A DNA stretch of 64,000 nt from Cyanophora paradoxa CCMP329. Its lineage: Eukaryota; Plantae; Glaucophyta. Made by a program: the position numbers and the translations under genes. Below, piece by piece: positions 1 through 19,469 of the stretch. Under the pieces are notes generated by a model that searched no databases, was not told where the DNA came from, and saw only the letters and a list, made by a program, of their open reading frames with translations. The stretch's first letter is position 1, and each line of letters opens with the position of its first letter. The stretch lies in the NCBI GenBank assembly GCA_004431415.1, contig QPMI01000582.1, positions 62,001 through 126,000 on the forward strand, read 5' to 3'.

Positions 1-1205
1 AGGTATGAAGTGTAGCACGCACAGTTCGACTGCCAATTGTGAATTGTGAACCGACATGTGGCCAGTTACGTTGGATAATAAGTGATGCACCGGGGGCTGT
101 GACAGCGGGCTGGCCAGGTGGATATTCTTTACGAGGTGCTAGGAGTTCGGACGGTAATTGCCACGGAATAGACGATTGCAATGCTGAAGTTGTTGTCACC
201 GTCGGTTTACACATGTGCACATGTACGTCGACGACTGTGAACGTCGTTATTGACGTTCGTTGAAGGTGCCAGACTGCCGCAAAAGGCGCCCCATGGACGG
301 CTGCAAGCGCCATTACAGTTGCACCTCCTGCTAGTCCGGTTACCGTTGCACAGTGCGAGTAACGCAAATGAGACGGTATGTTGAGGAGTTCGAGAGTCTG
401 CGTTATCGTGCCGGCTGATATTACAGATGGAAGCACGTGACGGAGTTTCTGCAGCGAAATCGCTGTTGACGCGCCTGATTTTCTGTGAGTGATGCGTATG
501 CAATGACAATTATAGGCAGGCAAGACGAAACTGACCTTCATGTGATGGTGACGCTTTAAGTATACGATGAAAGCAGAGCACGTCGGACGCAATGTAATAA
601 CCGTTTTTCAGCGGTGCTAGCACGAGAGACTGCGTGAATAATCGTGCCGTTGCAGCTGATTGTCCCATCCAGCCGGTAACGGTTACATTGATGCTGTGCG
701 CGCGTCCCTCATGTGCTGTCACCGCTGCGACACGCGCCCACGCACGATCCAAGCGCAATCGAGCGATACGTTTCTCAATTGCCTGCAAGACATGATGTTT
801 GACTTCCGAAACGAATGAGTTCTATCTGAAAAGGATGACCTGAATTCCGATAGCGTATGCGCTCCGATGGGATCGTTCATCATTGATCCACATGTGGACA
901 CTGGCGTCGCGGTAACACCTATATAATTGATGCGGTTGAGAGAGCAGAAGTTGATAGTACTGCTTCACAAATGCTGATGCTGTGCTATCAATTGATTTAT
1001 GCGTCGCGAGTGCAGATCTGGACAAATGAGAAATGGGGCTTGATTCTGCGCCCTCATGGGCTGTTGGAATTTCGAGTGCAAGCTCGACATTGAGTTCAGG
1101 TCCGCAGAGATCCACTGCAGTGGAGTTCCATTTCCATTCGCGGCACACAACATTGCCGACTATTCCCGGGACGTGGTATCGGCAGGCTGCGTGGAAGGTG
1201 AGCAC
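1..1205 (-). CDS. Helitron cargo gene with G3BP/Bre5-like NTF2 domain (copy 1, partial; upstream exons unresolved)
   Basis: ASAFVKQYYQLLLSQPHQLYRCYRDAS..GIQ|AIEKRIARL..VTVTGWM..RLFTQSLVLAPLKNGYYIASDVL matches the NTF2-like consensus. In-frame GT-AG introns at 783-839 and 475-535. Confidence 0.75.
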
Positions 1206-2893
1206 ATGTCTATGAATCTATGATGACCTGCGTTACGCTTACAGGTTCACGCAAAGCTCGTGACTGTGCCGCCTGGCTTACATGTCGTACTGGCATTGCC
1301 TCTGAGTCACTGGCATGTTCGCGATTGACTGTTTCGAGAATTATCTCAATGACGGGGTGCAAATTTGAAAAATATTTTTGTACCTGCTCTCTTTGCTCTG
1401 CTGCGCTGCACACGGGCAGCATTTGATGTAACAGATGTAGGGGATGCGGGCAGCAACGTTGACTTTGATGGTTGTTCGCGTTCTAAAACCGAGTTAAGAG
1501 TATAGAGTTATGCAATTAACTTACATAATATGTATACCCTTTTCTGTTGCAGGAACCCTCGGAATTGTCATGTCTTCACGCGTAGATCGATTTTCAATGT
1601 CTACATTTTCTCGATCAATGTGAACACGCGGTGGTGATAGAGTGCGTGCACGACGTCTGCGTGCCATCAAATCTGCGTCATGTTCCGATGGTTCTTCTGC
1701 ATTGGGCTCCGGTCTGCGATCATCTCTGACTGGCTCCGTGATGGCCATGGGATGGGCACGGTTCGACACATGCGCTTGTAAATTTTCAGTAATTTGTGCT
1801 CGTGGTTATTTAGAAGGAATTTCAATGCGCACTTGCAGAGGTGGGAATTATGACCATATAGACGAAGAGACAGAGCAACAATATTCCGACTGCAGCCGGT
1901 AATGTCCAGTGAGGTGCTGGGGTCTGGATATGCTCAACATACGGCGCATCCGCAGGGAGGGCAAATGCAAGATTTTTCTGATTCCCTGACAGCGTCAATG
2001 TAATCCATATGCCAGTAATGGATGGAGAAAATAACAGAGCTGCTGTACACCGCACTGGAAATTGTGACAACGACGCAAGATTCGTTATTTACAATCGCGT
2101 TGTTAGACTGCAGATATATGCGTACATATTGACATCCGCGATCGCATTTGTTTAATCCATGTGCAGTATCGTTCATGACGACGGGCGTTTATAATTACGG
2201 CACGCAATTCTGGGAGTAAATACGTCTCAGACAGCGTTTATGAATGTCCGTATTACCGCTTTTATATTCTTACCTCGATAAAGACGGTTTCTTTTTGCGG
2301 ACGTGGACGAATACATGTCGAGTAAAAGTGTCAATGCAAGTCCCAAATCTGCGTCTGTCGCCACGGAAATAGTGCCGGTGTCTGATAAGACAAACGAATC
2401 GGTTTTCTTGAGATGCCATTGGCAGTATCGCTTGAACAGCATGATACCAATTCCTGCACTGACGTCTGTAACGTAATCATGTTCATAAATGCGAGATTAA
2501 ATGCCTGATATAATTGTTGTGCAGGTGATAATGAACGGAGAGTTGCATATAATCGAGACGTGAATTATGGTTGTTATTGCGGTTGCATATACTGGAATTC
2601 CCGATAGTTGTCCGTTTCCATCATCGTGCGGGAATTTGTGGAAGTGAAAATGAGAAGCGATGTATTCTTCGCAGTTCTCTTTTTTTTCAAAGCTATGCCA
2701 ACTGCCTCTGTTGCAAATATGTTATTGTATTCGAGTTCAAGACTGCCAATATCAGTCGCTAAATCCGCGTACCAAGAACTGCAAATATCAGAATAACCAG
2801 TTCGGTACCGTACAGAAATTGTAGAGATGGAGTGCCCATTAAGTTCATGTCTGTGATCGACTGGGTTCAAAAACCGTATTGCGAGTAATGTAT

Positions 2894-3420
2894 GCGGGTT
2901 TATTATAATTATACGGCACTTTCTACCATGCCGTGCAGCATCAATACCCGCGAGGCTCACCTTTTAGCACGTTCAATCCACTCGCGGATGACGACAGGGA
3001 GAGAGGAATTGCTGATGCGGCGCATGAAGTCTCCGATGCGCGTGGTCCGAGCCGCACGACAGCCGCTGCAGCTGCGGCAGTTGCATTTAACGCCCAGCAT
3101 GTGATGCATTTCGAGCCAGGTTGATCGCCTGCTCGCATGCGGCGCGGCGTGGGCGCGCGGAAAGATGTCCGGGTCGGTACAGGAGCGGGTTTATTATAAT
3201 TATACGGCACTTTCTACCATGCCGTGCAGCATCAATACCCGCGAGGCTGACCTTTTAGCACGTTCGATCGACTCGCGGATGACGACAGGGAGAGAGGAAT
3301 TGCTGATGCGGCGCATGAAGTCTCCGATGGGCCTCGTCGGAGCCCCACGACAGCCGCTGCGGCAGTTGGATTTAACGCCCAGCATGTGACGCATTTCGAG
3401 CCAGGTTTATCGCCTGCTGC
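2894..3420. repeat. ~291-bp tandem repeat x~1.8 within the Helitron (also 14130-14655)
   Basis: GCGGGTTTATTATAATTATACGGCAC starts at 2894 and 3185. Confidence 0.9.
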
Positions 3421-4029
3421 AGTCGCGGACGAGGACACGCAGGGGGAGACGGGCGGTGCGGTGCTTGTATCTGCTGTCGGTGGTGTTCGGCGAGGTGGCA
3501 GGCACGGGCCCGCATCTTAAATAGCAGCAATCCTCACCTTCTAGCAGACTCCATGCACGGGCAGAGCGCGACAGTGAGCATGAGACGGGGCAGTGGTGCA
3601 CGTCTGTTGCGGCGCTGGCATGTCGTTCCGGCGTACTTGCTGCGGCGCCACCTGCAGCCACGGATGACGAGAGGCAGCACGGCATGTCGGTGGCGGCGCT
3701 TGCATCTGTTCACAGCGTATACGTAGTTGGGCGACGCGGAGCCTCGGAGACAGCGGGCGTGCAGGGCCAATAGCAGGGCGGGGATGCTAACCTTCTAGCA
3801 GACTCCACGCAATACCGGACGACAATGATATCGCCCGGAACTGCTGTACAATCACGAAGAAGATGCATTTCAAGATGTTTCGCTGGCGTGCACGTTTACG
3901 ACGCCAGCGGACGCGCGCAATCGGCGCATAGAGTCCCGGCTTCTTGATTATACGCATAGGGTTGTGTCCACGAAAAGTTCCACACGTTCGCGTACTGTAA
4001 TTGCAATTCTGCACACGGTATGGATGTGA

Positions 4030-4850
4030 ACGCGTACATATATATGTATATATGTACGTATACGTACGGATGTCAACGCTTACGTATATGTACGTATACG
4101 TATTCGCGAATACGCGCTGTAGATCTAGCGCTAGCTAGCCGGACTTGACAGTGCCGGGTTCAGATTCGCGCTAGACAGCGTTATAGTCACAGTGTGCGCT
4201 CTATAACTTTTGACCGCGGTCTAGCGCTACCTACTAGGCTAGCCGGACTTGACAGTACCAGGTTCAGATTCGCGCTAGAGAGCGCTATAGTACAGCGCCA
4301 GACTGCGCATGCGCCGCTAGTACGGATTGCACGCGTACACTACGCCGGACTGTATATATGTACTGACTCGAACTGGCACTGTCACAGTAGGCGCTCTATA
4401 ACTACGTATAATGGCTGCCCGGCCGGCTCGCTATAGCTATAGCTCCCTTGCAGGACTACAGCATTGCGGTATAGCTACTATTAGCTAGCCTCTGAGCACT
4501 GCCTAGCACAGCGCGTACACTACGCCGGACTGTATATACGTACTGACTCGAACTGGCAATGTCACAGCTAGTAAGCGCTCTATAACTACGTATACTGGCT
4601 GGCCGGCCGGCTCGCTATAGCTATTGCCGCAGTGCTCTCTTGCAGAACTACAGCATTGGAGATTGCGGTATAGCTATACCTAGCCTCTGAGCACTGGCAG
4701 AGGGGCACAGGCGGCACAGCTAGCTATAGTAGTAGACTGATAGTTGGCCCGGTTGGCAGTGCGGCGGCCTGGTTCACGTTTGTAGCTGCTTCGCACTAGT
4801 ATACGTACTGTCTCATCAGTCTGTCTGAGCGCTACTACTAGGCTAGGCTA
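4030..4850. repeat. CTAG/TATAG/TACGTA-rich low-complexity tract with ~107-bp and ~180-bp duplications (also ~15265-16085)
   Basis: CTAGCCGGACTTGACAGT occurs twice; CGCGTACACTACGCCGGACTGTATATA occurs at ~4333 and ~4513. Confidence 0.8.
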
Positions 4851-5160
4851 TTCTCGGAGCTTGGCCGGCCGGTCCACTCGCGAATCGCGATCGGTGCATT
4901 GGCATAACCAATGGATTGCTCAATGGCGATGTTTCGGTTCTGCTCGATCTTTTTTTCATTCAAGATTTGACGACTCAGTGACAAGATCTTGAAGGCTTCT
5001 GTTAATCGCAAGATCTTCAAGGCTTCTGTTAATCACAACTAAATCCGTCATCGAATCGTCAATGGCGCGAGATCGGTGAGATCTTTTTTAATTCAAGATC
5101 TTGACAGATCTTGCCAATGTGTTCGCGAAATTGTTTTTTGTATTCAGGATCTTGGCAAAT

Positions 5161-5742
5161 CTGAGGAAGGGCGCCGGGCTGCTGAGACGGGATATAAGTA
5201 TAATTATATACTCGAAGATCGACCTGGGGCAGATCTAATTAATAATTATCTGGCAGTGCAGATCTCGAGGGCGCGCCGACAGACGTGCGCCGCGGTGCGC
5301 GTCCGTGAAGGATCGAATTTTCGGGGTCACCTGGATTGTTGCGCCCTGTCGCGTCGTCGGAGGTCTCGATGGAGAACTGAGGAAGGGCGCCGGGCTGCTG
5401 AGACGGGATATAACTATAATTATATACTCGAAGATCGACCTGGGGCAGATCTAATTAACAATTATCTGGCAGTGCAGATGTCGAGGGCGCGCCGAAAGAC
5501 GTGCGCCGCGGTGCGCGTCCGTGAAGGATCGAATTTTCGGGGTCACCTGGATTCTTGCGCCCTGTCGCGTCGTCGGAGGTCTCGATCGAGAACTGAGGAA
5601 GGGCGCCGGGCTGCTGAGACGGGATATAACTATAATTATATACTCGAAGATCGATCTGGGGAAGATCTAATTAATAATTATCTGGCAGTGCAGATCTCGA
5701 GGGCGCGCGGAAAGACGTGCGCGTCCGTGAAGGATCGAATTT
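5161..5742. repeat. 216-bp tandem repeat x~2.7 (also ~16396-16977)
   Basis: CTGAGGAAGGGCGCCGGGCTGCTGAGACGGGATATA starts at 5161, 5377 and 5593. Confidence 0.92.
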
Positions 5743-5877
5743 TGAGGAGTTTATTTTTATAATATTGTTGGGAAGGAGGCCCGGGAGGGGCGAGGTTCTC
5801 GCGGCCAGGCGCATGCACAGAGAATCGCTTAAACAGAATCTCGAATGCATATAGCATCGATGTGCGGGACTGCGGAC

Positions 5878-6670
5878 GCGAGGGCGCGCGGAAAGGTCTG
5901 CAGGTCTGTAGAGGATAGAAGTTTCGGGGTCGGCTGGGTCCTCGCGGCCCGGCGCAGCTATTAAGCGTGCGGAAGGCTTCTTCTACATCTCAAATGCTTA
6001 TGCTATTGTTCCGCGCATGCGCCGCGGCGTGGGCGCGCGGAAAGATGTCCGGGCCTGTGCAGGATCGAATGTTTGCGTCGGCTGGGATCTCGTGCTCTTG
6101 CGCGTCTTCAAAGCTTGCGCAAGGCTTTAATAAATTCTGAAATGAATATTGTAGCGATGCGCACGCGTGAGGATGCGAGGGCGCGCGGAAAGATGTTCAG
6201 GTCTGTAGAGGATCGAATTTTCGGGGTGGGCTGGGTCCTCGCGGCCCGGCGCAGCTATAAAGCGTGCGGAAGGCTTCTTCTACATCTCAAATGCTTATGC
6301 TATTGTTCCGCGCATGCGCCGCGGCGTGGGCGCGTGGAAAGATGTCCGGGCCTGTGCAGGATCGAGACTTTGCTATCGGCTGGATTCTCGTGCTCTTCCG
6401 CGTCTTCAAAGCTTGTTGAAGGCTTTAAAAAAAATCTCAAATGAATATAGTAGGGATGCGCACTCGTGAGGATGCGAGGGCGCGCGGAAAGATGTCCAGG
6501 TCCGTCAAGGATCGAATTTTCGGGGTCGGCTGGGTCCTCGCGGCCCGGCGCATCTGCAATGCGTGCGGAAGGCTTCTTCTACATCTCAAATGCTTATGCT
6601 ATTGTTCCGCGCATGCGCGGCGGCGTTGGCGCGCGGAAAGATGTCTGGGGCTGTGCAGGATCGAATTTTT
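5878..6670. repeat. ~298-bp tandem repeat x~2.7 (also ~17113-17905)
   Basis: AGGGCGCGCGGAAAG starts at 5881, 6178 and 6477; the block GGAAGGCTTCTTCTACATCTCAAATGCTTATGCTATTGTTCC is shared. Confidence 0.9.
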
Positions 6671-7119
6671 GATGTCCGGTACCTTCCTGCGCTGCTCCGG
6701 GTTCGAAAAGCGGATTTCGGGAGTGCGCAGGCCCTGCTATGTCCATGCGCGCTCGTACGCATCGTTTGTGCGCTTCGCGGGACCGGCCGGAACCGGCCGG
6801 ATCAAATTTTCGGGCGACTCTTCGCACTGGAGCGTCGAGGGCGCCCGAAATCGAGCCTGCGGCGATGCGCTCGCGTTTGCGCGTCATTCTGTATCGTTCT
6901 GGGGCGTCCCTGGCGCGATTTCGTCGCGGGACCGGGCGGGACCGGGTCCCACCTTCTGACTCGGACTGTGTTTGTCGGAGGTTAAGTACCGGAATTGATC
7001 CAGAGGGAAATTCGATGTTCGCGCGACGTCCACGGGGGAGCGGTCGTCTTAGGGGAGCCAGGACGCTAAAAATGGATCTAGAGGGGTCTGTGGGGGTTCG
7101 GGCAGCTGTGTAATGTCCA

Positions 7120-10100
7120 TCAATCGCGTCCGTGTCGAGGCAGAATTAATATCTCGCCAGGATTGCGGTTGCGGATCGGTCGCATGAAGCCGCGCTGGTA
7201 CGAACGTCTTGTCCGCTTGTCCGGAGGGATGCACGGTACGGTGCGGGCGTGAAACGACGAGTGCCAGATGGGGTAGTTGAGCATATGGAAAGCTGCCTCC
7301 GGCCTGCCGAGTTCGCGGTGGGAGAGCGACTTCCGAATCGCTTTCGCCATCGCGCTCCGTAGGGTGCCTCCCTTCTCGGCCGCCTTTGCGAGCGCAGCGT
7401 ATATGCTCTCCAATGCCTGCGGTTCGACCTGCGGGCGCACAATGAGTTTCAGTACGTTCTACGTCTGTCCAGGGACGCGTGAGCACGGCCGTACCTTCAG
7501 TGCGTACTTGAACATGTACGCTCCCATCGCTTCGAAGTCCGCGACGAGATCGAAGAAGAGGTTGGAGTGCGCAATGCGGGACAGCCACTCGTTGAACAGC
7601 GCCACAAACAAGTCTTCTACTGTGCGTCGCATCGGCACCAGTAGCCTGTCGCCCCGTTGCGCGTTCTTGAGTTCTGGCGTCGACCTGTGCGTTTGTATTC
7701 GTCAGGAATCGTTCCGGGGGCACGTCATCGCAGAACTTGAGCACGCACATGAGTCTCGCGTATCGGGACGCGCGCCCTGGCAGTCCGAAGCGGCACCACT
7801 TCCTCGCCCTCCACCAGGCGTTGTTCAGCTTCTTGACGAGGTCGGCAAGTTCCTGGGCGTCCTTGTCGGAAGCACCGTGGATGGGCTGGCATCCTTCGAG
7901 CAACGGGTTCGTGTACTCCTGAGTCGGCTTGAACTGCGCTGCAGCGGCGAAGAGCTCTTCGTGACGCTTGCGCGTGGAAGATGAATAGTGCTGTGCCTGC
8001 TTGGCCTTCGTCATGCGGCACGTGCCGCTGTGTCGGTGAATGTTGAACGTGAGGATGACCTTCCGGAGAAACGCGGTCGCCCAATCATGACGAAGGGCAT
8101 CGGGCACGTGAAGGTTGTCCTCGACGGCTGGGTCGTCGGGCTTCGGAGGTCGAGGATCTCCGCCTTGACGATGCTGTCAAAGAATTCGAGGTACTCTTTC
8201 ATGTGCTGCTTCTCGCACGTGTCGTACATAGGCATGCCTTCGCACCAGCCGATGAGGTGCCCATGCAACGTCCGCCGCTGCTGCTCGCCGTGACGGATGA
8301 AATGACCTGTCATCTTGTAACCGCCGAACATCGCCCTCGCGCCTTCGGAGTACATCAGCTTGATCAACGCGTTCCAGCGCCGCTGATAGTGACGGACAAC
8401 GATTCCGGACTCCGAGTTCAGGATCGTGTCCTTCTCGTTTGCGCTTAGCGCATCGATTGCGGCCTGGTTGTGGAACCTCTCGCGGTCGATGGCTCTGTAC
8501 AGACTCGCGTCACCGTGATCGTTGAAGCTCATAGTGTACCATATCTGCGGCGGCCGTACGTCTGTGCGGCAGCAATGAGCTGGCCGTGACCGGTCTCGAG
8601 ATGCTGGTGCGATCCCGGCACCTGGAGATGGGCGCGTTACGCAATAATGTGCAAATTGTTGTCAAGGGTGTGCTGCGGACTCACCGCATTCAGCGTCGCG
8701 CGGACGAGGTGGCGCTTAACAAAGTCTACGGTAACGCTGGGGTCATCGACGGCGGTGGTGAGGTGGTCCATGACGTGCGCGGCCGTCACCGGGTGACCGG
8801 CCGCCTCCAACTTGTCGAGCTCGAGACTCTGAATTGCACAGTTGCTCTTCTGGTAAGCCTTGAGGTTGAGATAATCCGTCGCCTGGACGAAGAAGAATCC
8901 GATGTCGGCGACAAGGGCGCGTGCCTTGTCGGACAGCAGGAACCACTTGTTGTACTTGCTGATCGACAGCGGTACTTTGCGTTGATCGAGAGGGTCTGCA
9001 GGGTCGCCTATCCGTCCGTGCCGGCCTGTGTTCAGAAAGGGTCAATGTCGGTCTGCACGAAATCACAAATCGACGGCGGTGCCGGTGCACTGTGCTCACC
9101 GTCTGGAAACGCAAATGGAAATGGGCTGTGCAGTACTCTGCACCCTTGCTGAAATTTAAGTGGACGCGATCGAGGATTGGCAACGTGCGAGTACGTTCGG
9201 CAACATCTTCGCCGAACGCCGTGGCAACGTCGATGAGCCTGTGGTGATACTCGGACTGCACGACTGCGGGCGTCGCCGGCTGTTGAGGCATGTCGAATCC
9301 GGTGGGGTCGCTGTACACTGCGGCCTCTGTATCGACGTCGTGCGCCGTAGCACGTGCAAGCTGCACGAACTCGTCCACGTCCTTGTTGTTGATCTGCGCG
9401 AGCTTGTCGAGGTCGACGAGATCGGAGGGGCGCGTCTGGGCGCGTCCTCGGCTTCGTCCTCGGATCCGGTGTCGCGTGTCGACCTTGCTGTTGACGCGTC
9501 ACGTGTCGGCCGAGCTTCAAGGACGACTCCATGAATTGCTTCAACACGGGATCTCCTACGTCGGTCAACAGGCGACGGGCTCCGGAACTGGCGATTTCGT
9601 ATCCAACGTCGTCGTGCACTTCGGGTTCTTCCGAAACTTCCGCCTCCTCGTCGCTGATTGCTGGCTCGGTTCCCGTCGCCGCGTGCGGTACCGCTGTCAG
9701 GTCCACCGACTCGCCGGTTCCGGGTACGTGGGGCTGGCGTCCGCGCTTGCGGGCGACTCGCGGCGGTGCGGGGGTGCGGTCGCGCAGCTCTTCCTCCGCA
9801 AGTTCTTGCTTCCACGTCGTCTCTTTGGCAGTGACCTCGTCCCAGTAGGCGTCGTCGAGCTTGTCGAATCCGCATTTCTGGTACCACTTGTTGCCGGCCG
9901 CGACGAGCAGCTTCATGACGCTTCTCACCTTGGAAGTGCTGAACTCCCAGTAGTTCGTGAACCTGCGGTCGTGCCCGGGCGCCGTCGGTTTCTCCATGTT
10001 CACGTACATCATCGCGTCTCGCGGCGCGAGGGCTTCATCGATTCGACGAGCTCGGCGGGCTGCGAGTAAACCATGGTGACCTTCGGGTGCGCGGCCTGCT

Positions 10101-10980
10101 GCCGACCGATGCGCGTGGTTGCGATGTTCACGAACGACACGGCCGGACTGCATACGACAGCCTCTGGAAACGTGAGGCCTGCTGCCTCCCTGGCGAGGTC
10201 TTCCGACGGCGGTGTCGGGTGGATGCCGTTCTGTGCGGGATGGTCAATGACCATACTGGAGACCGGTAGAGACACACTCGGACCTCTTTTGAAAGCCCGC
10301 AGATATCGACACCTTGCTCTGCGCGGTGTCTGTGGCACATTGCGCAGAGCAACGGTTTCCGCGGTTTTGACGTTCCGGTTTCCAGCTTGTGCATGTAATC
10401 CTCCGTCTCCTGAATGCGCCGTATCGCGGCGTCGTCGATCCCGTGGGGCTTCAATATGTTGAGGTGCGTCTCGGGGTGGAGATCGTCGATGTAGTCCCGG
10501 ACGCCGCAGCAATCACACGGCACCATCGGCTGGTACAGAGCTGCGGACAGCATTACTGGCGAAATGCACATAACCGAACTGAAATTCACATACTGTACAG
10601 CATGTCGATGATAGCGTCCTTGAGCGCCTCAAGAAACTGCGGAAATTTACTCCGCTTTTTTGCGATTGCGTCAATTACGTCGTGCAGTAGCTCATTCGGG
10701 TGCTCGTAGTCGCTGATCCACGTGTTTACGCATTTCAGTTTGAACGCGAGAGAGCGTTCATTTTTGGCCGAACGGATAGCTGCACGTCTGTCGCGACCCG
10801 CATCACTGTGTAATGGTTTGGTATTCTTCTCGTCCTGGTATCGCCGCGCACGACGATCATGTTCTTGTGACCGTTGGCCGTGTGTATGCTTTGCACGTGC
10901 CTCTGCATCTGCGTCTGCATGTCCTGTCTGTTCAAGTGGACGCCGAGATGCAGACGGTCTTGCAGGTAAATGTTCGCGTC
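7120..10980 (-). CDS. Helitron Rep protein (CxxC pairs, DUF6570-like N-terminal region, Helitron_like_N / HUH-Y2 Rep domain); spliced, 3'-truncated, no helicase; start approximate
   Basis: Motifs in order: CDCCG..LCAMCH; AQNGIHP..LTFPEAVV..KVRSVMKLL..NKWY; FPFAFPDG; motif 1 PQIWYTMSFND (~8520-8552); motif 2 HGEQQRRTLHGHLIGW (~8243-8293); HRHSGTC; CRFGLP; motif 3 AYMFKYALK (~7495-7521); RELGRPEAAFHMLNYPIWHSS. Apparent frameshifts coincide with short C-runs. Confidence 0.85.
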
Positions 10981-11022
10981 GTACAGCGGTGTGCTCGTAA
11001 CAATTACACGGATCAGTATCTG

Positions 11023-12442
11023 CTATAGGTCGCAGGTCCGTTTCTCCATGGAGAAATGTAGGTCGAGGAGGAATAAAAACCGGTATGGTGCCGAGCCATT
11101 CGTGATCGGCAGGAAGAGGACGTGCCGGACGTCCAGCAGGACACCTTGAATTGTGCCTGGAGCGAAGCGGGTACTATCTGTGAAATTCTCGTCGAGAGGA
11201 AGCGCTTCACGTCCAGATGCATGTACTATGCACATGGACAAGGTATGAAGTGTAGCACGCACAGTTCGACTGCCAATTGTGAATTGTGAACCGACATGTG
11301 GCCAGTTACGTTGGATAATAAGTGATGCACCGGGGCTGTGACAGCGGGCTGGCCAGGTGGATATTCTTTACGAGGTGCTAGGAGTTCGGACGGTAATTGC
11401 CACGGAATAGACGATTGCAATGCTGAAGTTGTTGTCACCGTCGGTTTACACATGTGCACATGTACGTCGACGACTGTGAACGTCGTTATTGACGTTCGTT
11501 GAAGGTGCCAGACTGCCGCAAAAGGCGCCCCATGGACGGCTGCAAGCGCCATTACAGTTGCACCTCCTGCTAGTCCGGTTACCGTTGCACAGTGCGAGTA
11601 ACGCAAATGAGACGGTATGTTGAGGAGTTCGAGAGTCTGCGTTATCGTGCCGGCTGATATTACAGATGGAAGCACGTGACGGAGTTTCTGCAGCGAAATC
11701 GCTGTTGACGCGCCTGATTTTCTGTGAGTGATGCGTATGCAATGACAATTATAGGCAGGCAAGACGAAACTGACCTTCATGTGATGGTGACGCTTTAAGT
11801 ATACGATGAAAGCAGAGCACGTCGGACGCAATGTAATAACCGTTTTTCAGCGGTGCTAGCACGAGAGACTGCGTGAATAATCGTGCCGTTGCAGCTGATT
11901 GTCCCATCCAGCCGGTAACGGTTACATTGATGCTGTGCGCGCGTCCCTCATGTGCTGTCACCGCTGCGACACGCGCCCACGCACGATCCAAGCGCAATCG
12001 AGCGATACGTTTCTCAATTGCCTGCAAGACATGATGTTTGACTTCCGAAACGAATGAGTTCTATCTGAAAAGGATGACCTGAATTCCGATAGCGTATGCG
12101 CTCCGATGGATCGTTCATCATTGATCCACATGTGGACACTGGCGTCGCGGTAACACCTATATAATTGATGCGGTTGAGAGAGCAGAAGTTGATAGTACTG
12201 CTTCACAAATGCTGATGCTGTGCTATCAATTGATTTATGCGTCGCGAGTGCAGATCTGGACAAATGAGAAATGGGCTTGATTCTGCGCCCTCATGGGCTG
12301 TTGGAATTTCGAGTGCAAGCTCGACATTGAGTTCAGGTCCGCAGAGATCCACTGCAGTGGAGTTCCATTTCCATTCGCGGCACACAACATTGCCGACTAT
12401 TCCCGGGACGTGGTATCGGCAGGCTGCGTGGAAGGTGAGCAC
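11023..12442 (-). CDS. Helitron cargo gene with NTF2-like domain (copy 2)
   Basis: Near-identical to copy 1 but with -1 homopolymer indels near 11332, 12108 and 12273. The copy-1 reading frame projects onto a stop at 11023, just upstream of the Rep gene. Confidence 0.7.
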
Positions 12443-15400
12443 ATGTCTATGAATCTATGATGACCTGCGTTACGCTTACAGGTTCACGCAAAGCTCGTGA
12501 CTGTGCCGCCTGGCTTACATGTCGTACTGGCATTGCCTCTGAGTCACTGGCATGTTCGCGATTGACTGTTTCGAGAATTATCTCAATGACGGGGTGCAAA
12601 TTTGAAAAATATTTTTGTACCTGCTCTCTTTGCTCTGCTGCGCTGCACACGGGCAGCATTTGATGTAACAGATGTAGGGATGCGGGCAGCAACGTTGACT
12701 TTGATGGTTGTTCGCGTTCTAAAACCGAGTTAAGAGTATAGAGTTATGCAATTAACTTACATAATATGTATACCCTTTTCTGTTGCAGGAACCCTCGGAA
12801 TTGTCATGTCTTCACGCGTAGATCGATTTTCAATGTCTACATTTTCTCGATCAATGTGAACACGCGGTGGTGATAGAGTGCGTGCACGACGTCTGCGTGC
12901 CATCAAATCTGCGTCATGTTCCGATGGTTCTTCTGCATTGGGCTCCGGTCTGCGATCATCTCTGACTGGCTCCGTGATGGCCATGGGATGGGCACGGTTC
13001 GACACATGCGCTTGTAAATTTTCAGTAATTTGTGCTCGTGGTTATTTAGAAGGAATTTCAATGCGCACTTGCAGAGGTGGGAATTATGACCATATAGACG
13101 AAGAGACAGAGCAACAATATTCCGACTGCAGCCGGTAATGTCCAGTGAGGTGCTGGGTCTGGATATGCTCAACATACGGCGCATCCGCAGGGAGGGCAAA
13201 TGCAAGATTTTTCTGATTCCCTGACAGCGTCAATGTAATCCATATGCCAGTAATGGATGGAGAAAATAACAGAGCTGCTGTACACCGCACTGGAAATTGT
13301 GACAACGACGCAAGATTCGTTATTTACAATCGCGTTGTTAGACTGCAGATATATGCGTACATATTGACATCCGCGATCGCATTTGTTTAATCCATGTGCA
13401 GTATCGTTCATGACGACGGGCGTTTATAATTACGGCACGCAATTCTGGGAGTAAATACGTCTCAGACAGCGTTTATGAATGTCCGTATTACCGCTTTTAT
13501 ATTCTTACCTCGATAAAGACGGTTTCTTTTTGCGGACGTGGACGAATACATGTCGAGTAAAAGTGTCAATGCAAGTCCCAAATCTGCGTCTGTCGCCACG
13601 GAAATAGTGCCGGTGTCTGATAAGACAAACGAATCGGTTTTCTTGAGATGCCATTGGCAGTATCGCTTGAACAGCATGATACCAATTCCTGCACTGACGT
13701 CTGTAACGTAATCATGTTCATAAATGCGAGATTAAATGCCTGATATAATTGTTGTGCAGGTGATAATGAACGGAGAGTTGCATATAATCGAGACGTGAAT
13801 TATGGTTGTTATTGCGGTTGCATATACTGGAATTCCCGATAGTTGTCCGTTTCCATCATCGTGCGGGAATTTGTGGAAGTGAAAATGAGAAGCGATGTAT
13901 TCTTCGCAGTTCTCTTTTTTTTTCAAAGCTATGCCAACTGCCTCTGTTGCAAATATGTTATTGTATTCGAGTTCAAGACTGCCAATATCAGTCGCTAAAT
14001 CCGCGTACCAAGAACTGCAAATATCAGAATAACCAGTTCGGTACCGTACAGAAATTGTAGAGATGGAGTGCCCATTAAGTTCATGTCTGTGATCGACTGG
14101 GTTCAAAAACCGTATTGCGAGTAATGTATGCGGGTTTATTATAATTATACGGCACTTTCTACCATGCCGTGCAGCATCAATACCCGCGAGGCTCACCTTT
14201 TAGCACGTTCAATCCACTCGCGGATGACGACAGGGAGAGAGGAATTGCTGATGCGGCGCATGAAGTCTCCGATGCGCGTGGTCCGAGCCGCACGACAGCC
14301 GCTGCAGCTGCGGCAGTTGCATTTAACGCCCAGCATGTGATGCATTTCGAGCCAGGTTGATCGCCTGCTCGCATGCGGCGCGGCGTGGGCGCGCGGAAAG
14401 ATGTCCGGGTCGGTACAGGAGCGGGTTTATTATAATTATACGGCACTTTCTACCATGCCGTGCAGCATCAATACCCGCGAGGCTGACCTTTTAGCACGTT
14501 CGATCGACTCGCGGATGACGACAGGGAGAGAGGAATTGCTGATGCGGCGCATGAAGTCTCCGATGGGCCTCGTCGGAGCCCCACGACAGCCGCTGCGGCA
14601 GTTGGATTTAACGCCCAGCATGTGACGCATTTCGAGCCAGGTTTATCGCCTGCTGCAGTCGCGGACGAGGACACGCAGGGGAGACGGGCGGTGCGGTGCT
14701 TGTATCTGCTGTCGGTGGTGTTCGGCGAGGTGGCAGGCACGGCCCGCATCTTAAATAGCAGCAATCCTCACCTTCTAGCAGACTCCATGCACGGGCAGAG
14801 CGCGACAGTGAGCATGAGACGGGGCAGTGGTGCACGTCTGTTGCGGCGCTGGCATGTCGTTCCGGCGTACTTGCTGCGGCGCCACCTGCAGCCACGGATG
14901 ACGAGAGGCAGCACGGCATGTCGGTGGCGGCGCTTGCATCTGTTCACAGCGTATACGTAGTTGGGCGACGCGGAGCCTCGGAGACAGCGGGCGTGCAGGG
15001 CCAATAGCAGGGCGGGGATGCTAACCTTCTAGCAGACTCCACGCAATACCGGACGACAATGATATCGCCCGGAACTGCTGTACAATCACGAAGAAGATGC
15101 ATTTCAAGATGTTTCGCTGGCGTGCACGTTTACGACGCCAGCGGACGCGCGCAATCGGCGCATAGAGTCCCGGCTTCTTGATTATACGCATAGGGTTGTG
15201 TCCACGAAAAGTTCCACACGTTCGCGTACTGTAATTGCAATTCTGCACACGGTATGGATGTGAACGCGTACATATATATGTATATATGTACGTATACGTA
15301 CGGATGTCAACGCTTACGTATATGTACGTATACGTATTCGCGAATACGCGCTGTAGATCTAGCGCTAGCTAGCCGGACTTGACAGTGCCGGGTTCAGATT

Positions 15401-18369
15401 CGCGCTAGACAGCGTTATAGTCACAGTGTGCGCTCTATAACTTTTGACCGCGGTCTAGCGCTACCTACTAGGCTAGCCGGACTTGACAGTACCAGGTTCA
15501 GATTCGCGCTAGAGAGCGCTATAGTACAGCGCCAGACTGCGCATGCGCCGCTAGTACGGATTGCACGCGTACACTACGCCGGACTGTATATATGTACTGA
15601 CTCGAACTGGCACTGTCACAGTAGGCGCTCTATAACTACGTATAATGGCTGCCCGGCCGGCTCGCTATAGCTATAGCTCCCTTGCAGGACTACAGCATTG
15701 CGGTATAGCTACTATTAGCTAGCCTCTGAGCACTGCCTAGCACAGCGCGTACACTACGCCGGACTGTATATACGTACTGACTCGAACTGGCAATGTCACA
15801 GCTAGTAAGCGCTCTATAACTACGTATACTGGCTGGCCGGCCGGCTCGCTATAGCTATTGCCGCAGTGCTCTCTTGCAGAACTACAGCATTGGAGATTGC
15901 GGTATAGCTATACCTAGCCTCTGAGCACTGGCAGAGGGGCACAGGCGGCACAGCTAGCTATAGTAGTAGACTGATAGTTGGCCCGGTTGGCAGTGCGGCG
16001 GCCTGGTTCACGTTTGTAGCTGCTTCGCACTAGTATACGTACTGTCTCATCAGTCTGTCTGAGCGCTACTACTAGGCTAGGCTATTCTCGGAGCTTGGCC
16101 GGCCGGTCCACTCGCGAATCGCGATCGGTGCATTGGCATAACCAATGGATTGCTCAATGGCGATGTTTCGGTTCTGCTCGATCTTTTTTTCATTCAAGAT
16201 TTGACGACTCAGTGACAAGATCTTGAAGGCTTCTGTTAATCGCAAGATCTTCAAGGCTTCTGTTAATCACAACTAAATCCGTCATCGAATCGTCAATGGC
16301 GCGAGATCGGTGAGATCTTTTTTTAATTCAAGATCTTGACAGATCTTGCCAATGTGTTCGCGAAATTGTTTTTTGTATTCAGGATCTTGGCAAATCTGAG
16401 GAAGGGCGCCGGGCTGCTGAGACGGGATATAAGTATAATTATATACTCGAAGATCGACCTGGGGCAGATCTAATTAATAATTATCTGGCAGTGCAGATCT
16501 CGAGGGCGCGCCGACAGACGTGCGCCGCGGTGCGCGTCCGTGAAGGATCGAATTTTCGGGGTCACCTGGATTGTTGCGCCCTGTCGCGTCGTCGGAGGTC
16601 TCGATCGAGAACTGAGGAAGGGCGCCGGGCTGCTGAGACGGGATATAACTATAATTATATACTCGAAGATCGACCTGGGGCAGATCTAATTAACAATTAT
16701 CTGGCAGTGCAGATGTCGAGGGCGCGCCGAAAGACGTGCGCCGCGGTGCGCGTCCGTGAAGGATCGAATTTTCGGGGTCACCTGGATTCTTGCGCCCTGT
16801 CGCGTCGTCGGAGGTCTCGATCGAGAACTGAGGAAGGGCGCCGGGCTGCTGAGACGGGATATAACTATAATTATATACTCGAAGATCGATCTGGGGAAGA
16901 TCTAATTAATAATTATCTGGCAGTGCAGATCTCGAGGGCGCGCGGAAAGACGTGCGCGTCCGTGAAGGATCGAATTTTGAGGAGTTTATTTTTATAATAT
17001 TGTTGGGAAGGAGGCCCGGGAGGGGCGAGGTTCTCGCGGCCAGGCGCATGCACAGAGAATCGCTTAAACAGAATCTCGAATGCATATAGCATCGATGTGC
17101 GGGACTGCGGACGCGAGGGCGCGCGGAAAGGTCTGCAGGTCTGTAGAGGATAGAAGTTTCGGGGTCGGCTGGGTCCTCGCGGCCCGGCGCAGCTATTAAG
17201 CGTGCGGAAGGCTTCTTCTACATCTCAAATGCTTATGCTATTGTTCCGCGCATGCGCCGCGGCGTGGGCGCGCGGAAAGATGTCCGGGCCTGTGCAGGAT
17301 CGAATGTTTGCGTCGGCTGGGATCTCGTGCTCTTGCGCGTCTTCAAAGCTTGCGCAAGGCTTTAATAAATTCTGAAATGAATATTGTAGCGATGCGCACG
17401 CGTGAGGATGCGAGGGCGCGCGGAAAGATGTTCAGGTCTGTAGAGGATCGAATTTTCGGGGTGGGCTGGGTCCTCGCGGCCCGGCGCAGCTATAAAGCGT
17501 GCGGAAGGCTTCTTCTACATCTCAAATGCTTATGCTATTGTTCCGCGCATGCGCCGCGGCGTGGGCGCGTGGAAAGATGTCCGGGCCTGTGCAGGATCGA
17601 GACTTTGCTATCGGCTGGATTCTCGTGCTCTTCCGCGTCTTCAAAGCTTGTTGAAGGCTTTAAAAAAAATCTCAAATGAATATAGTAGGGATGCGCACTC
17701 GTGAGGATGCGAGGGCGCGCGGAAAGATGTCCAGGTCCGTCAAGGATCGAATTTTCGGGGTCGGCTGGGTCCTCGCGGCCCGGCGCATCTGCAATGCGTG
17801 CGGAAGGCTTCTTCTACATCTCAAATGCTTATGCTATTGTTCCGCGCATGCGCGGCGGCGTTGGCGCGCGGAAAGATGTCTGGGGCTGTGCAGGATCGAA
17901 TTTTTGATGTCCGGTACCTTCCTGCGCTGCTCCGGGTTCGAAAAGCGGATTTCGGGAGTGCGCAGGCCCTGCTATGTCCATGCGCGCTCGTACGCATCGT
18001 TTGTGCGCTTCGCGGGACCGGCCGGAACCGGCCGGATCAAATTTTCGGGCGACTCTTCGCACTGGAGCGTCGAGGGCGCCCGAAATCGAGCCTGCGGCGA
18101 TGCGCTCGCGTTTGCGCGTCATTCTGTATCGTTCTGGGGCGTCCCTGGCGCGATTTCGTCGCGGGACCGGGCGGGACCGGGTCCCACCTTCTGACTCGGA
18201 CTGTGTTTGTCGGAGGTTAAGTACCGGAATTGATCCAGAGGGAAATTCGATGTTCGCGCGACGTCCACGGGGGAGCGGTCGTCTTAGGGGAGCCAGGACG
18301 CTAAAAATGGATCTAGAGGGGTCTGTGGGGGTTCGGGCAGCTGTGTAATGTCCATCAATCGCGTCCGTG

Positions 18370-18398
18370 TCGAGGCAGAATTAATAATTCTGCCTCGA
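18370..18398. other. Perfect 29-bp palindrome at the outer end of the Helitron array
   Basis: TCGAGGCAGAATTA-A-TAATTCTGCCTCGA. Only the left arm plus 3 nt is present at the internal junction (7135-7151). Confidence 0.85.
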
Positions 18399-18833
18399 GG
18401 GAGTGCGATACGGAAATTATTTAGTAGGGGAGATCTCGAGTTGAAAAAAAGGTTAAAAAAGGAATTTCGCTCGGCGGTTTTTGGGTTTGAGAAAGAGGCT
18501 TCGCCTGAAAGAGGCTTCGCCTGATGCATGCGCATGTGCAACCGGTTGAACCGGCCCGGATCCGGATCCGGATGATGGGAACGGATCCCGGAGGTTGCCG
18601 TTGCATGCGCATGTGTGTTCAGTAATGAAGGCATGTACCCCCTAGGCTCCGACTGCCGCGAAGCGAAATTCAAATTCCATTCGCAGGGGCCCAGGCCCCT
18701 GGCACCCCCGGCCCCGGGCCCCGGGGCCCTGCTGAGGGCCGCCTGGGCCGGGGCCGATCCAGGTCCATTCCAGGATCATCCAGCCTGATGAGTGGCAGCC
18801 TCAAGCTTATATATATATGATCAGCGCTATAGC

Positions 18834-19257
18834 TAGGGGCGCTGATCGAACAAAATCGCCGTGTTCAGTGTTTGTTCGTTCAGAAGCCCCCGTGTTCATT
18901 GTTCAGTGAACGCTGTTCGAACTGCGAGCTCCTCGCTTCCCCCCCCCATCCCGGGAGTCCCGCCCCCGAGAGCTTCTCGCGCTTCGCGCGATAAAAGGAA
19001 AAGCCATAGAAGTTGCTAAAACGAATTAATAAGAGCGGATTCAGAGGGCGAAATACCTCTTTCCGACGGTTTCTGACGGTTTCCGTGCCGAAACTTGCCC
19101 GAAAGTGGCCCGAAACTGGGGCCCGGGGGCCCCCCTGCCGATGAAGTCGGTGTTCATGAACAGCGGTTTCTTTGTTCACGTTCGTTCAGTTCAGCAAAAA
19201 GGCTGTTCGTTAACGTTCACGTTCATTCGAACAGTGTTCGTTCAAAGAGCGCCCCTA
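18834..19257. mobile_element. 424-bp non-autonomous hAT-type MITE
   Basis: TIRs TAGGGGCGCT / AGCGCCCCTA; 8-bp TSD GCTATAGC at 18826-18833 and 19258-19265; many subterminal GTTC/GAAC motifs; no convincing ORF. Confidence 0.85.
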
Positions 19258-19469
19258 GCTATAGCCAGCTGCATGCAGGCGGTCCGCGGCGACTCCGCGC
19301 GCGCGGCCGCGCGCGCGGTATTAAACGTACTGCGGTACTACAGTACGGTGCTACCAGTCCTCGAAGCCGCCAGCGCCGGCGCCGCCCGAGCTCGTGCTCG
19401 CCTCGCGATCGCGATCCGAGGCGCGGGCGCTCGGAGGCCGCGGGTTCAGCTTGCTGCCGAGTGCGGGGT

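Follow-up and report, generated by a model that had tools for sequence, protein, structure and literature searches.

Organization of the locus

The window analysed here, a stretch of 64,000 nucleotides of the Cyanophora paradoxa CCMP329 genome, begins with a head-to-tail array of 1.64 units of 11,240 nt. Each unit carries an NTF2-like domain (PF02136) and, about 1 kb downstream of it and in the same orientation, there is a Rep gene of the Helitron type; this arrangement on the minus strand is as the first-pass annotation described it. The positions of all features are given in Table 1, where copy A is the domain at the left edge of the window and copy B is its second occurrence in the other repeat unit (11714-12249). 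The array extends beyond the left window edge and has its right end at 18386, with positions 1-7151 recurring at 11241-18386 at 99.86% identity. Nine single-base changes in homopolymer length and one substitution were found between the units. The GC content of the first 18.4 kb varies from 0.41 to 0.64 compared with about 0.74 in the remaining 45 kb.

The presence of the domain in both copies had been taken earlier as a sign that it is maintained. The recurrence itself was confirmed but the two copies are tandem units which are effectively identical, and therefore they cannot count as two separate signs of maintenance and hold no dN/dS information. One lesson of this locus is that two tandem units should not be read as independent proof that a gene is kept.

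The right end of the array falls shortly beyond the midpoint of a perfect palindrome, whereas the internal junction at 7151/7152 (7140-7160) was observed to hold its left arm only. The placement of the palindrome at the unit junction and at the array end suggests that the units were put together by a hairpin-mediated join or a template switch. The sequence past the internal junction starts with TC. No canonical pair of Helitron ends, either 5'-TC and CTRR-3' with a hairpin or the asymmetric inverted repeats of the Helitron2 type, could be assigned at the array.

Table 1. Positions of the features of the array, as numbered in the window
Feature	Position	Strand	Remarks
Copy A exon 1	840-1207	-	candidate ATG 1207-1205; leader of about 72 aa and first NTF2 half
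AFVKQYY	954-974	-	within copy A exon 1
RCYRDAS	900-920	-	within copy A exon 1
Copy A proposed intron 1	783-839	-	57 nt, GT..AG, in-frame stop; joins profile positions 37 and 43 collinearly
Copy A exon 2	536-782	-	second NTF2 half
VTVTGWM	666-686	-	within copy A exon 2
FTQSLVLAPLKNGYYIASD	582-638	-	within copy A exon 2
Copy A proposed intron 2	475-535	-	61 nt, GT..AG; aligns the exon 2 frame with that of exon 3; proposed from sequence and frames
Copy A exon 3, start	1-474	-	157 stop-free codons, runs off the window edge; no Pfam, PDB or atlas match
Copy B exon 1	12079-12444	-	assembly lacks three G's, after 12404, 12272 and 12107
Copy B exon 2	11775-12021	-	second NTF2 half; proposed introns 12022-12078 and 11714-11774
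Exon 3	10594-11713	-	373 codons, all open in one frame when the G's missing after 11331 and 11138 are supplied
Helitron-type Rep gene	7152-10593	-	GC3-rich; cut at 7151/7152, ahead of any helicase
Rep introns seen in RNA	10541-10593, 10231-10283, 9025-9098, 8619-8681	-	CT..AC joints on the plus strand, in X1-X3 only
HUH motif LHGHLIGW	8245-8268	-	in Rep
Two-tyrosine motif YMFKYALK	7495-7518	-	in Rep
Internal tandem repeats	5161-5722 and 5829-6669; again 16396-16957 and 17064-17904
Perfect 14+14-nt palindrome TCGAGGCAGAATTA/TAATTCTGCCTCGA	18370-18398	.	right end of the array (18386) shortly beyond the midpoint

The NTF2-like domain

Each exon piece was taken singly for database searches, family scans and structure look-ups, while the joined model was only translated, its open codons counted and its composition measured. 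A Pfam scan matched the exon 1 piece (822-1205, minus strand) to positions 2-37 of the NTF2 profile with 26.3 bits (E 1.1e-5) and the exon 2 piece (510-788, minus strand) to positions 43-115 of 116 with 20.3 bits (E 7.7e-4), where the cut-off for this family is 21 bits. The two pieces are collinear on the minus strand and are split by a GT..AG stretch with an in-frame stop, the proposed intron 1, which resembles the RNA-verified introns of Rep in its size and ends. Among solved structures, exon 2 was found to be closest to Rasputin (3UJM, E 9e-4) followed by G3BP2 (0.045), with G3BP1 also among its best matches, and NTF2 proper gave no match to it at E<=1. For exon 1, NTF2 (0.042) and Rasputin (0.065) scored much alike. 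The embedding (atlas) search placed exon 2 among NTF2 clusters with a score of 0.94, on 200 of 256 features. Judged by these matches, the NTF2-like domain is real and complete, it seems to lean towards G3BP and it lies where it was first noted.

Like the domains of G3BP, Rasputin and Bre5 (3UJM, 5DRV and 4FCJ), exon 2 has the F-x-Q-x-x-VLAP...YY..D pattern and exon 1 has the FV+QYY..L helix. However, identity to these proteins is only about 30% and it is a transposase that comes after the domain. In G3BP proteins, an acidic linker leads to an RRM (and RGG) at the C-terminus; no RRM or other Pfam family was found in the exon 3, 4 and 5 pieces, which are followed by the Rep nuclease. NTF2 (1OUN/1U5O) and NXT1 belong to the same family, PF02136, and exon 1 shares QYYQL and Y.DAS...W with NTF2. 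Unlike stand-alone NTF2, which is about 125 aa long, the domain described here comes after a leader of 72 aa, with a long extension on its C-terminal side.

The first-pass annotation had the domain rebuilt by two introns. This is plausible for 783-839, which would join the collinear halves, but 475-535 is not needed for the domain and its role is to link exon 2 to the open frame downstream. A competing acceptor (CACAG) is located at 483, 8 nt upstream of that of the proposed intron 2. Its use would shorten the intron to 53 nt and lead to a stop 20 codons on, so that the product could be a small NTF2 protein of its own, or both forms could be made.

The NTF2 exons have a GC content of 0.51 compared with 0.74 for positions 20001-64000 of the window. 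As this composition differs from that of host genes, the domain was not freshly captured out of the GC-rich Cyanophora genome, in agreement with the earlier view. No relatives of the exon 1 (114 aa) and exon 2 (82 aa) pieces were found by a length-limited word-index protein search, which is blind to fusions and long models, nor any of exon 2 in JGI metagenomes and the viral sequences of IMG/VR. The family scan gave no second NTF2 domain upstream of the first or in open reading frames elsewhere in the repeat unit.

Upstream of the domain, the minus strand of copy A holds candidate exons at 1187-1780, comprising an open stretch with a GTAAGC donor at 1242, in phase with an acceptor at 1187, and a further open stretch with a GTAAGT donor at about 1525. 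The joint of 1242 with 1187, if used, would make ATG 1207 intronic. These candidate exons gave no family match.

The Rep gene and the damage to this copy

The Rep nuclease holds both the HUH and the two-tyrosine motif, by which a Helitron-type Rep is recognized. Its piece at 8155-8550 matches Helitron_like_N with E 3.3e-5, and the same family was found in the paralogous gene models P0002 (8e-11), P0003 (2e-10) and P0028 (4e-10). The Rep protein of the locus is 100% identical to the EukProt Cyanophora paradoxa model tig00021433_g21295.t1.

Contigs of the RNA-like runs X1, X2 and X3 and of the DNA run X6 were placed on 8001-14000 at a likeness of at least 95%. Those of X1-X3 cover 8001-10616 almost fully, with four GT..AG introns. 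As the Rep joints are present in X1-X3 and none is present in the DNA run, X1-X3 hold RNA that has been spliced, and the minus strand is the one from which Rep is transcribed. Some of the Rep RNA contigs are 3-4% off the window sequence, and therefore come from paralogs. Over the NTF2 exons and their junctions the picture is different. Expression of the domain, which the proposal of a spliced gene had implied, did not appear in these data, as no X1-X3 contig lies on 10617-14000, an absence that carries little weight with contigs at a likeness of at least 95%. In the expressed copies, the 5' part could be missing or have diverged by more than 5%.

The Rep gene of this unit is damaged at two places. 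A frameshifting deletion of 46 nt was found at about 9511 by comparison with the RNA contigs, which have 45-46 extra letters, and with P0028 (tig00021502_g22056.t1), which is 99% identical near the deletion and has 16 extra residues. The deleted form does exist in the genome since it is seen in an X6 DNA contig. Furthermore, the Rep frame meets a stop seven codons past the cut at 7151/7152, where the next unit begins. No PIF1-like helicase was found in the window, and a tblastn search with six full RepHel proteins matched only 8104-8553. With a frameshifting deletion and no helicase, the repeat unit is non-autonomous. It is a truncated Rep derivative, and the present data do not support an active rolling-circle element at this locus.

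Two additional Rep introns seem likely on the minus strand. One is a 66-nt in-frame GT..AG stretch at 7429-7494, which would remove the stop at 7459-7461. The other, of about 112 nt at approximately 7684-7796, is implied by the models P0001 and P0028.

Missing G's and the frame joining NTF2 to Rep

The X6 contigs were observed to insert one G at 12 sites (8153, 8551, 9122, 9423, 10029, 11138, 11331, 12107, 12272, 12404, 12676 and 13154), which puts the error rate of the assembly in G runs at about one per 500 nt when compared with short-read DNA contigs. At the sites among these where the two units differ, X6 sides with copy A in five out of five. The G at 12404 (equivalent to 1167) is missing from both units. 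When it is restored, ATG 12444 (1207 in copy A) comes to lie in frame with NTF2, about 72 codons ahead of it. Missing G's break the frames, which explains why the public models P0001, P0028 and P0003, and perhaps P0002, start at an internal Met. The lesson of this locus is that G-homopolymer errors in an assembly conceal long frames and shorten gene models.

With the G's restored, and with the four Rep introns seen in RNA and the two proposed NTF2 introns removed, one frame of 1023 codons is open from ATG 12444 to 9158. It ends there because the 46-nt deletion moves the Rep nuclease to another frame. From 12444 to 10594, 617 codons are free of stops and in phase with Rep. Exon 3, which forms the link between the domain and the first Rep exon, has no stop in its own frame compared with 9-18 in each of the other five, and the longest open run over 2000 shuffles of its sequence was 248 codons. 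The part of exon 3 with no known homology (304 codons) has a strong 3-base periodicity that none of 5000 shuffles equalled. Exon 3 has no match in Pfam, PDB or the atlas, and the atlas scores it like a non-protein (recognition 1155). Its last 65 or so codons match the start of the paralog P0002 (residues 5-69, E 7e-7, BLASTP), and an RNA contig splices its end (10594-10616, donor at 10594) to the next Rep exon.

The domain had been regarded as the transposon's own separate gene. That view is not supported once the read-supported G's are included, as one frame runs from the domain into the RNA-verified exons of Rep and NTF2 is accordingly read as the head of the Rep frame. On the evidence of the frames, a separate NTF2 gene is less likely than a module at the N-terminus of Rep.

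The two parts of this frame differ in composition. GC3 ranges from 0.2 to 0.55 between the ATG and about 10800, and from 0.6 to 0.93 thereafter. Homology to P0002, a 60%-identical paralog, begins at this switch, with residue 5 at 10789. In addition, an X6 DNA contig, which comes from another copy in the genome, agrees with the window as far as 10723, beyond which it runs on in 97 GC-rich letters unrelated to it. The AT3-rich module and the GC3-rich Rep therefore have different histories, with the join at about 10,720-10,800, and since the X6 contig departs upstream of 10723, the copies of this Rep do not all share one 5' part.

Relatives and comparison with known systems

An exhaustive representative search with the Rep HUH piece gave 27 matches. 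Pfam was run on 25 proteins, namely 24 of these matches and the cluster member P0028, and NTF2 was found in none of the 25. A word-index search with the paralog P0002 returned only itself. The four Cyanophora Rep models (P0001 and P0002, which are EukProt Cyanophora paradoxa models, together with P0003 and P0028) are without NTF2 and are all N-terminally short. At least three of them begin at an internal Met, while the start of P0002 is uncertain. As they are short in the way that homopolymer errors predict, these models neither show nor exclude an NTF2 domain.

The nearest Rep relatives outside Cyanophora have Helitron_like_N and PIF1 with Exo_endo_phos, OTU or DUF6570. We noticed that P0011, P0012, P0015, P0018 and P0019 carry a C-terminal AP-endonuclease (Exo_endo_phos), sometimes with OTU, which is the Helentron/Helitron2 type. 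Such relatives hint at the lineage to which this element might belong.

Accessory domains known in the RepHel proteins of Helitrons and Helentrons are the OTU protease, the AP endonuclease, a DUF6570 zinc-finger-like region and RPA-like domains. The element described here resembles these systems in its HUH and two-tyrosine Rep, and the gain of extra domains by RepHel is a known theme. It differs from them in that this copy has no helicase and none of the 25 relatives has NTF2. Our literature search found no paper that links Helitrons with NTF2 or G3BP, and it gave only incidental co-occurrences for this pair as well as for Cyanophora with Helitron.

Gene capture by Helitrons and the resulting chimeric transcripts are known from maize and bats. 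As in such captures, a block of other composition is joined to element sequence in one frame. However, the block is fused here to the transposase itself and is not an internal fragment, and its composition rules out a recent capture from the host.

Origin and role of the NTF2 module

The reading we prefer, with a probability of roughly 0.5, is that NTF2 is the head of a 5' module which became fused in frame to a Helitron-type Rep and is preserved here in a copy that is now dead. The module would consist of the leader of about 72 aa, the G3BP-type NTF2-like domain split by its 57-nt intron and some 300 codons which are probably disordered. Fused in frame at the start of Rep, it would form an N-terminal extension of the transposase and not an independent cargo gene, with the AT3-rich and GC3-rich parts joined at the position given above. 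We infer that the two NTF2 introns are used, and the module translated together with Rep, in intact relatives. NTF2 and G3BP domains dimerise and bind FG-nucleoporin peptides; by analogy, the head might serve in self-association, or might help a large transposase to dock at the nuclear pore and be imported. The present copy no longer works, owing to the 46-nt deletion, which lies between the module and the nuclease domain, and to the cut before any helicase, and its unit has been multiplied head-to-tail.

The competing acceptor of intron 2 raises the question of whether the NTF2 domain could instead be a small gene of its own. Starting at ATG 12444/1207, such a gene would combine the 57-nt intron with the 53-nt form of intron 2 to give about 225 aa ending 20 codons past the domain, and Rep would be made from its own transcript, with translation starting further downstream at an ATG such as 11780 or at a Met in exon 3. 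The proximal CACAG acceptor does have more pyrimidines ahead of it, the 53-nt intron has the length of two RNA-verified introns and the distance of CACAG from a TCATTGC element is like the spacing in the verified intron 10231-10283. The Rep RNA contigs stop short of NTF2 and the paralog models start without it, as this arrangement would have it, but a small NTF2 transcript is likewise absent from the X1-X3 contigs. Moreover, a separate gene leaves unexplained why 373 codons after the domain are open and in phase with Rep and why the frame has 93 open codons ahead of the first Met in exon 3, and it requires either that a promoter lie within the NTF2 gene or that the transcripts overlap. We consider a separate small gene rather unlikely for these reasons.

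Two other explanations take the join with Rep as fortuitous or give it a different direction. The AT-rich NTF2 block might be a foreign or old gene fragment that was captured beside a Rep fragment and is not translated, its open frame being due to youth and not to selection. The silence of the region in the three RNA-like runs is in keeping with this, as are its composition unlike that of Rep, the failure of the NTF2 pieces to find relatives in the protein (length-limited), metagenome and viral searches, and the fact that the unit is defective and was amplified as a repeat and not by transposition. What makes an untranslated passenger improbable is that 617 stop-free codons in phase with Rep, with canonical splice sites where they are needed, would not be expected of it. 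It is also conceivable, though quite doubtful, that the 5' half of a Helitron Rep was taken up by another AT-rich element or a satellite-like unit, to which NTF2 would belong. Rep makes up only 3.6 kb of the 11.24-kb unit and is truncated, Helitron termini were not identified, and the rest of the unit differs in composition and holds tandem repeats of 216 nt and 299 nt. However, the join lies in frame at the very start of the Rep homology within one long open frame, and no other part of the unit gave a transposase or Pfam match.

An extension of the fusion reading concerns the intact Helitrons of Cyanophora. We tentatively propose, as a possibility that is less probable than the fusion itself, that in several of their lineages the G3BP-type NTF2 is a selected N-terminal domain of RepHel, or an alternatively spliced product, which acts in nuclear-pore docking, in self-association or as a tie to G3BP and stress granules. 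A role of the domain as a decoy against stress granules, suggested in the first-pass annotation, is not supported by the present analysis.

Helitron transposases acquire extra domains and pieces of host genes. A selected NTF2 head, if true, would add to the rolling-circle transposons an accessory domain that has been described for none of them. If intact copies translate NTF2 as the head of the transposase, this would offer a new route by which a large DNA transposase reaches the nucleus or enters RNA-granule biology. Translation of NTF2 together with Rep in such copies would also provide a domain fusion that can be dated, in which an AT3-rich module met a GC3-rich Rep.

Other features of the unit and its surroundings

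Internal tandem repeats were observed in each unit, one with a period of 216 nt (2.6 copies) and the other with a period of 299/149 nt (2.8/5.3 copies). Open reading frames across these repeats and elsewhere in the unit gave no family match, only noise below threshold. The stretch that separates the array from the GC-rich host DNA holds a small MITE-like element (18826-19265), which has imperfect terminal inverted repeats of 29 nt (GCTATAGCTAGGGGCGCT...) located about 380 nt apart.
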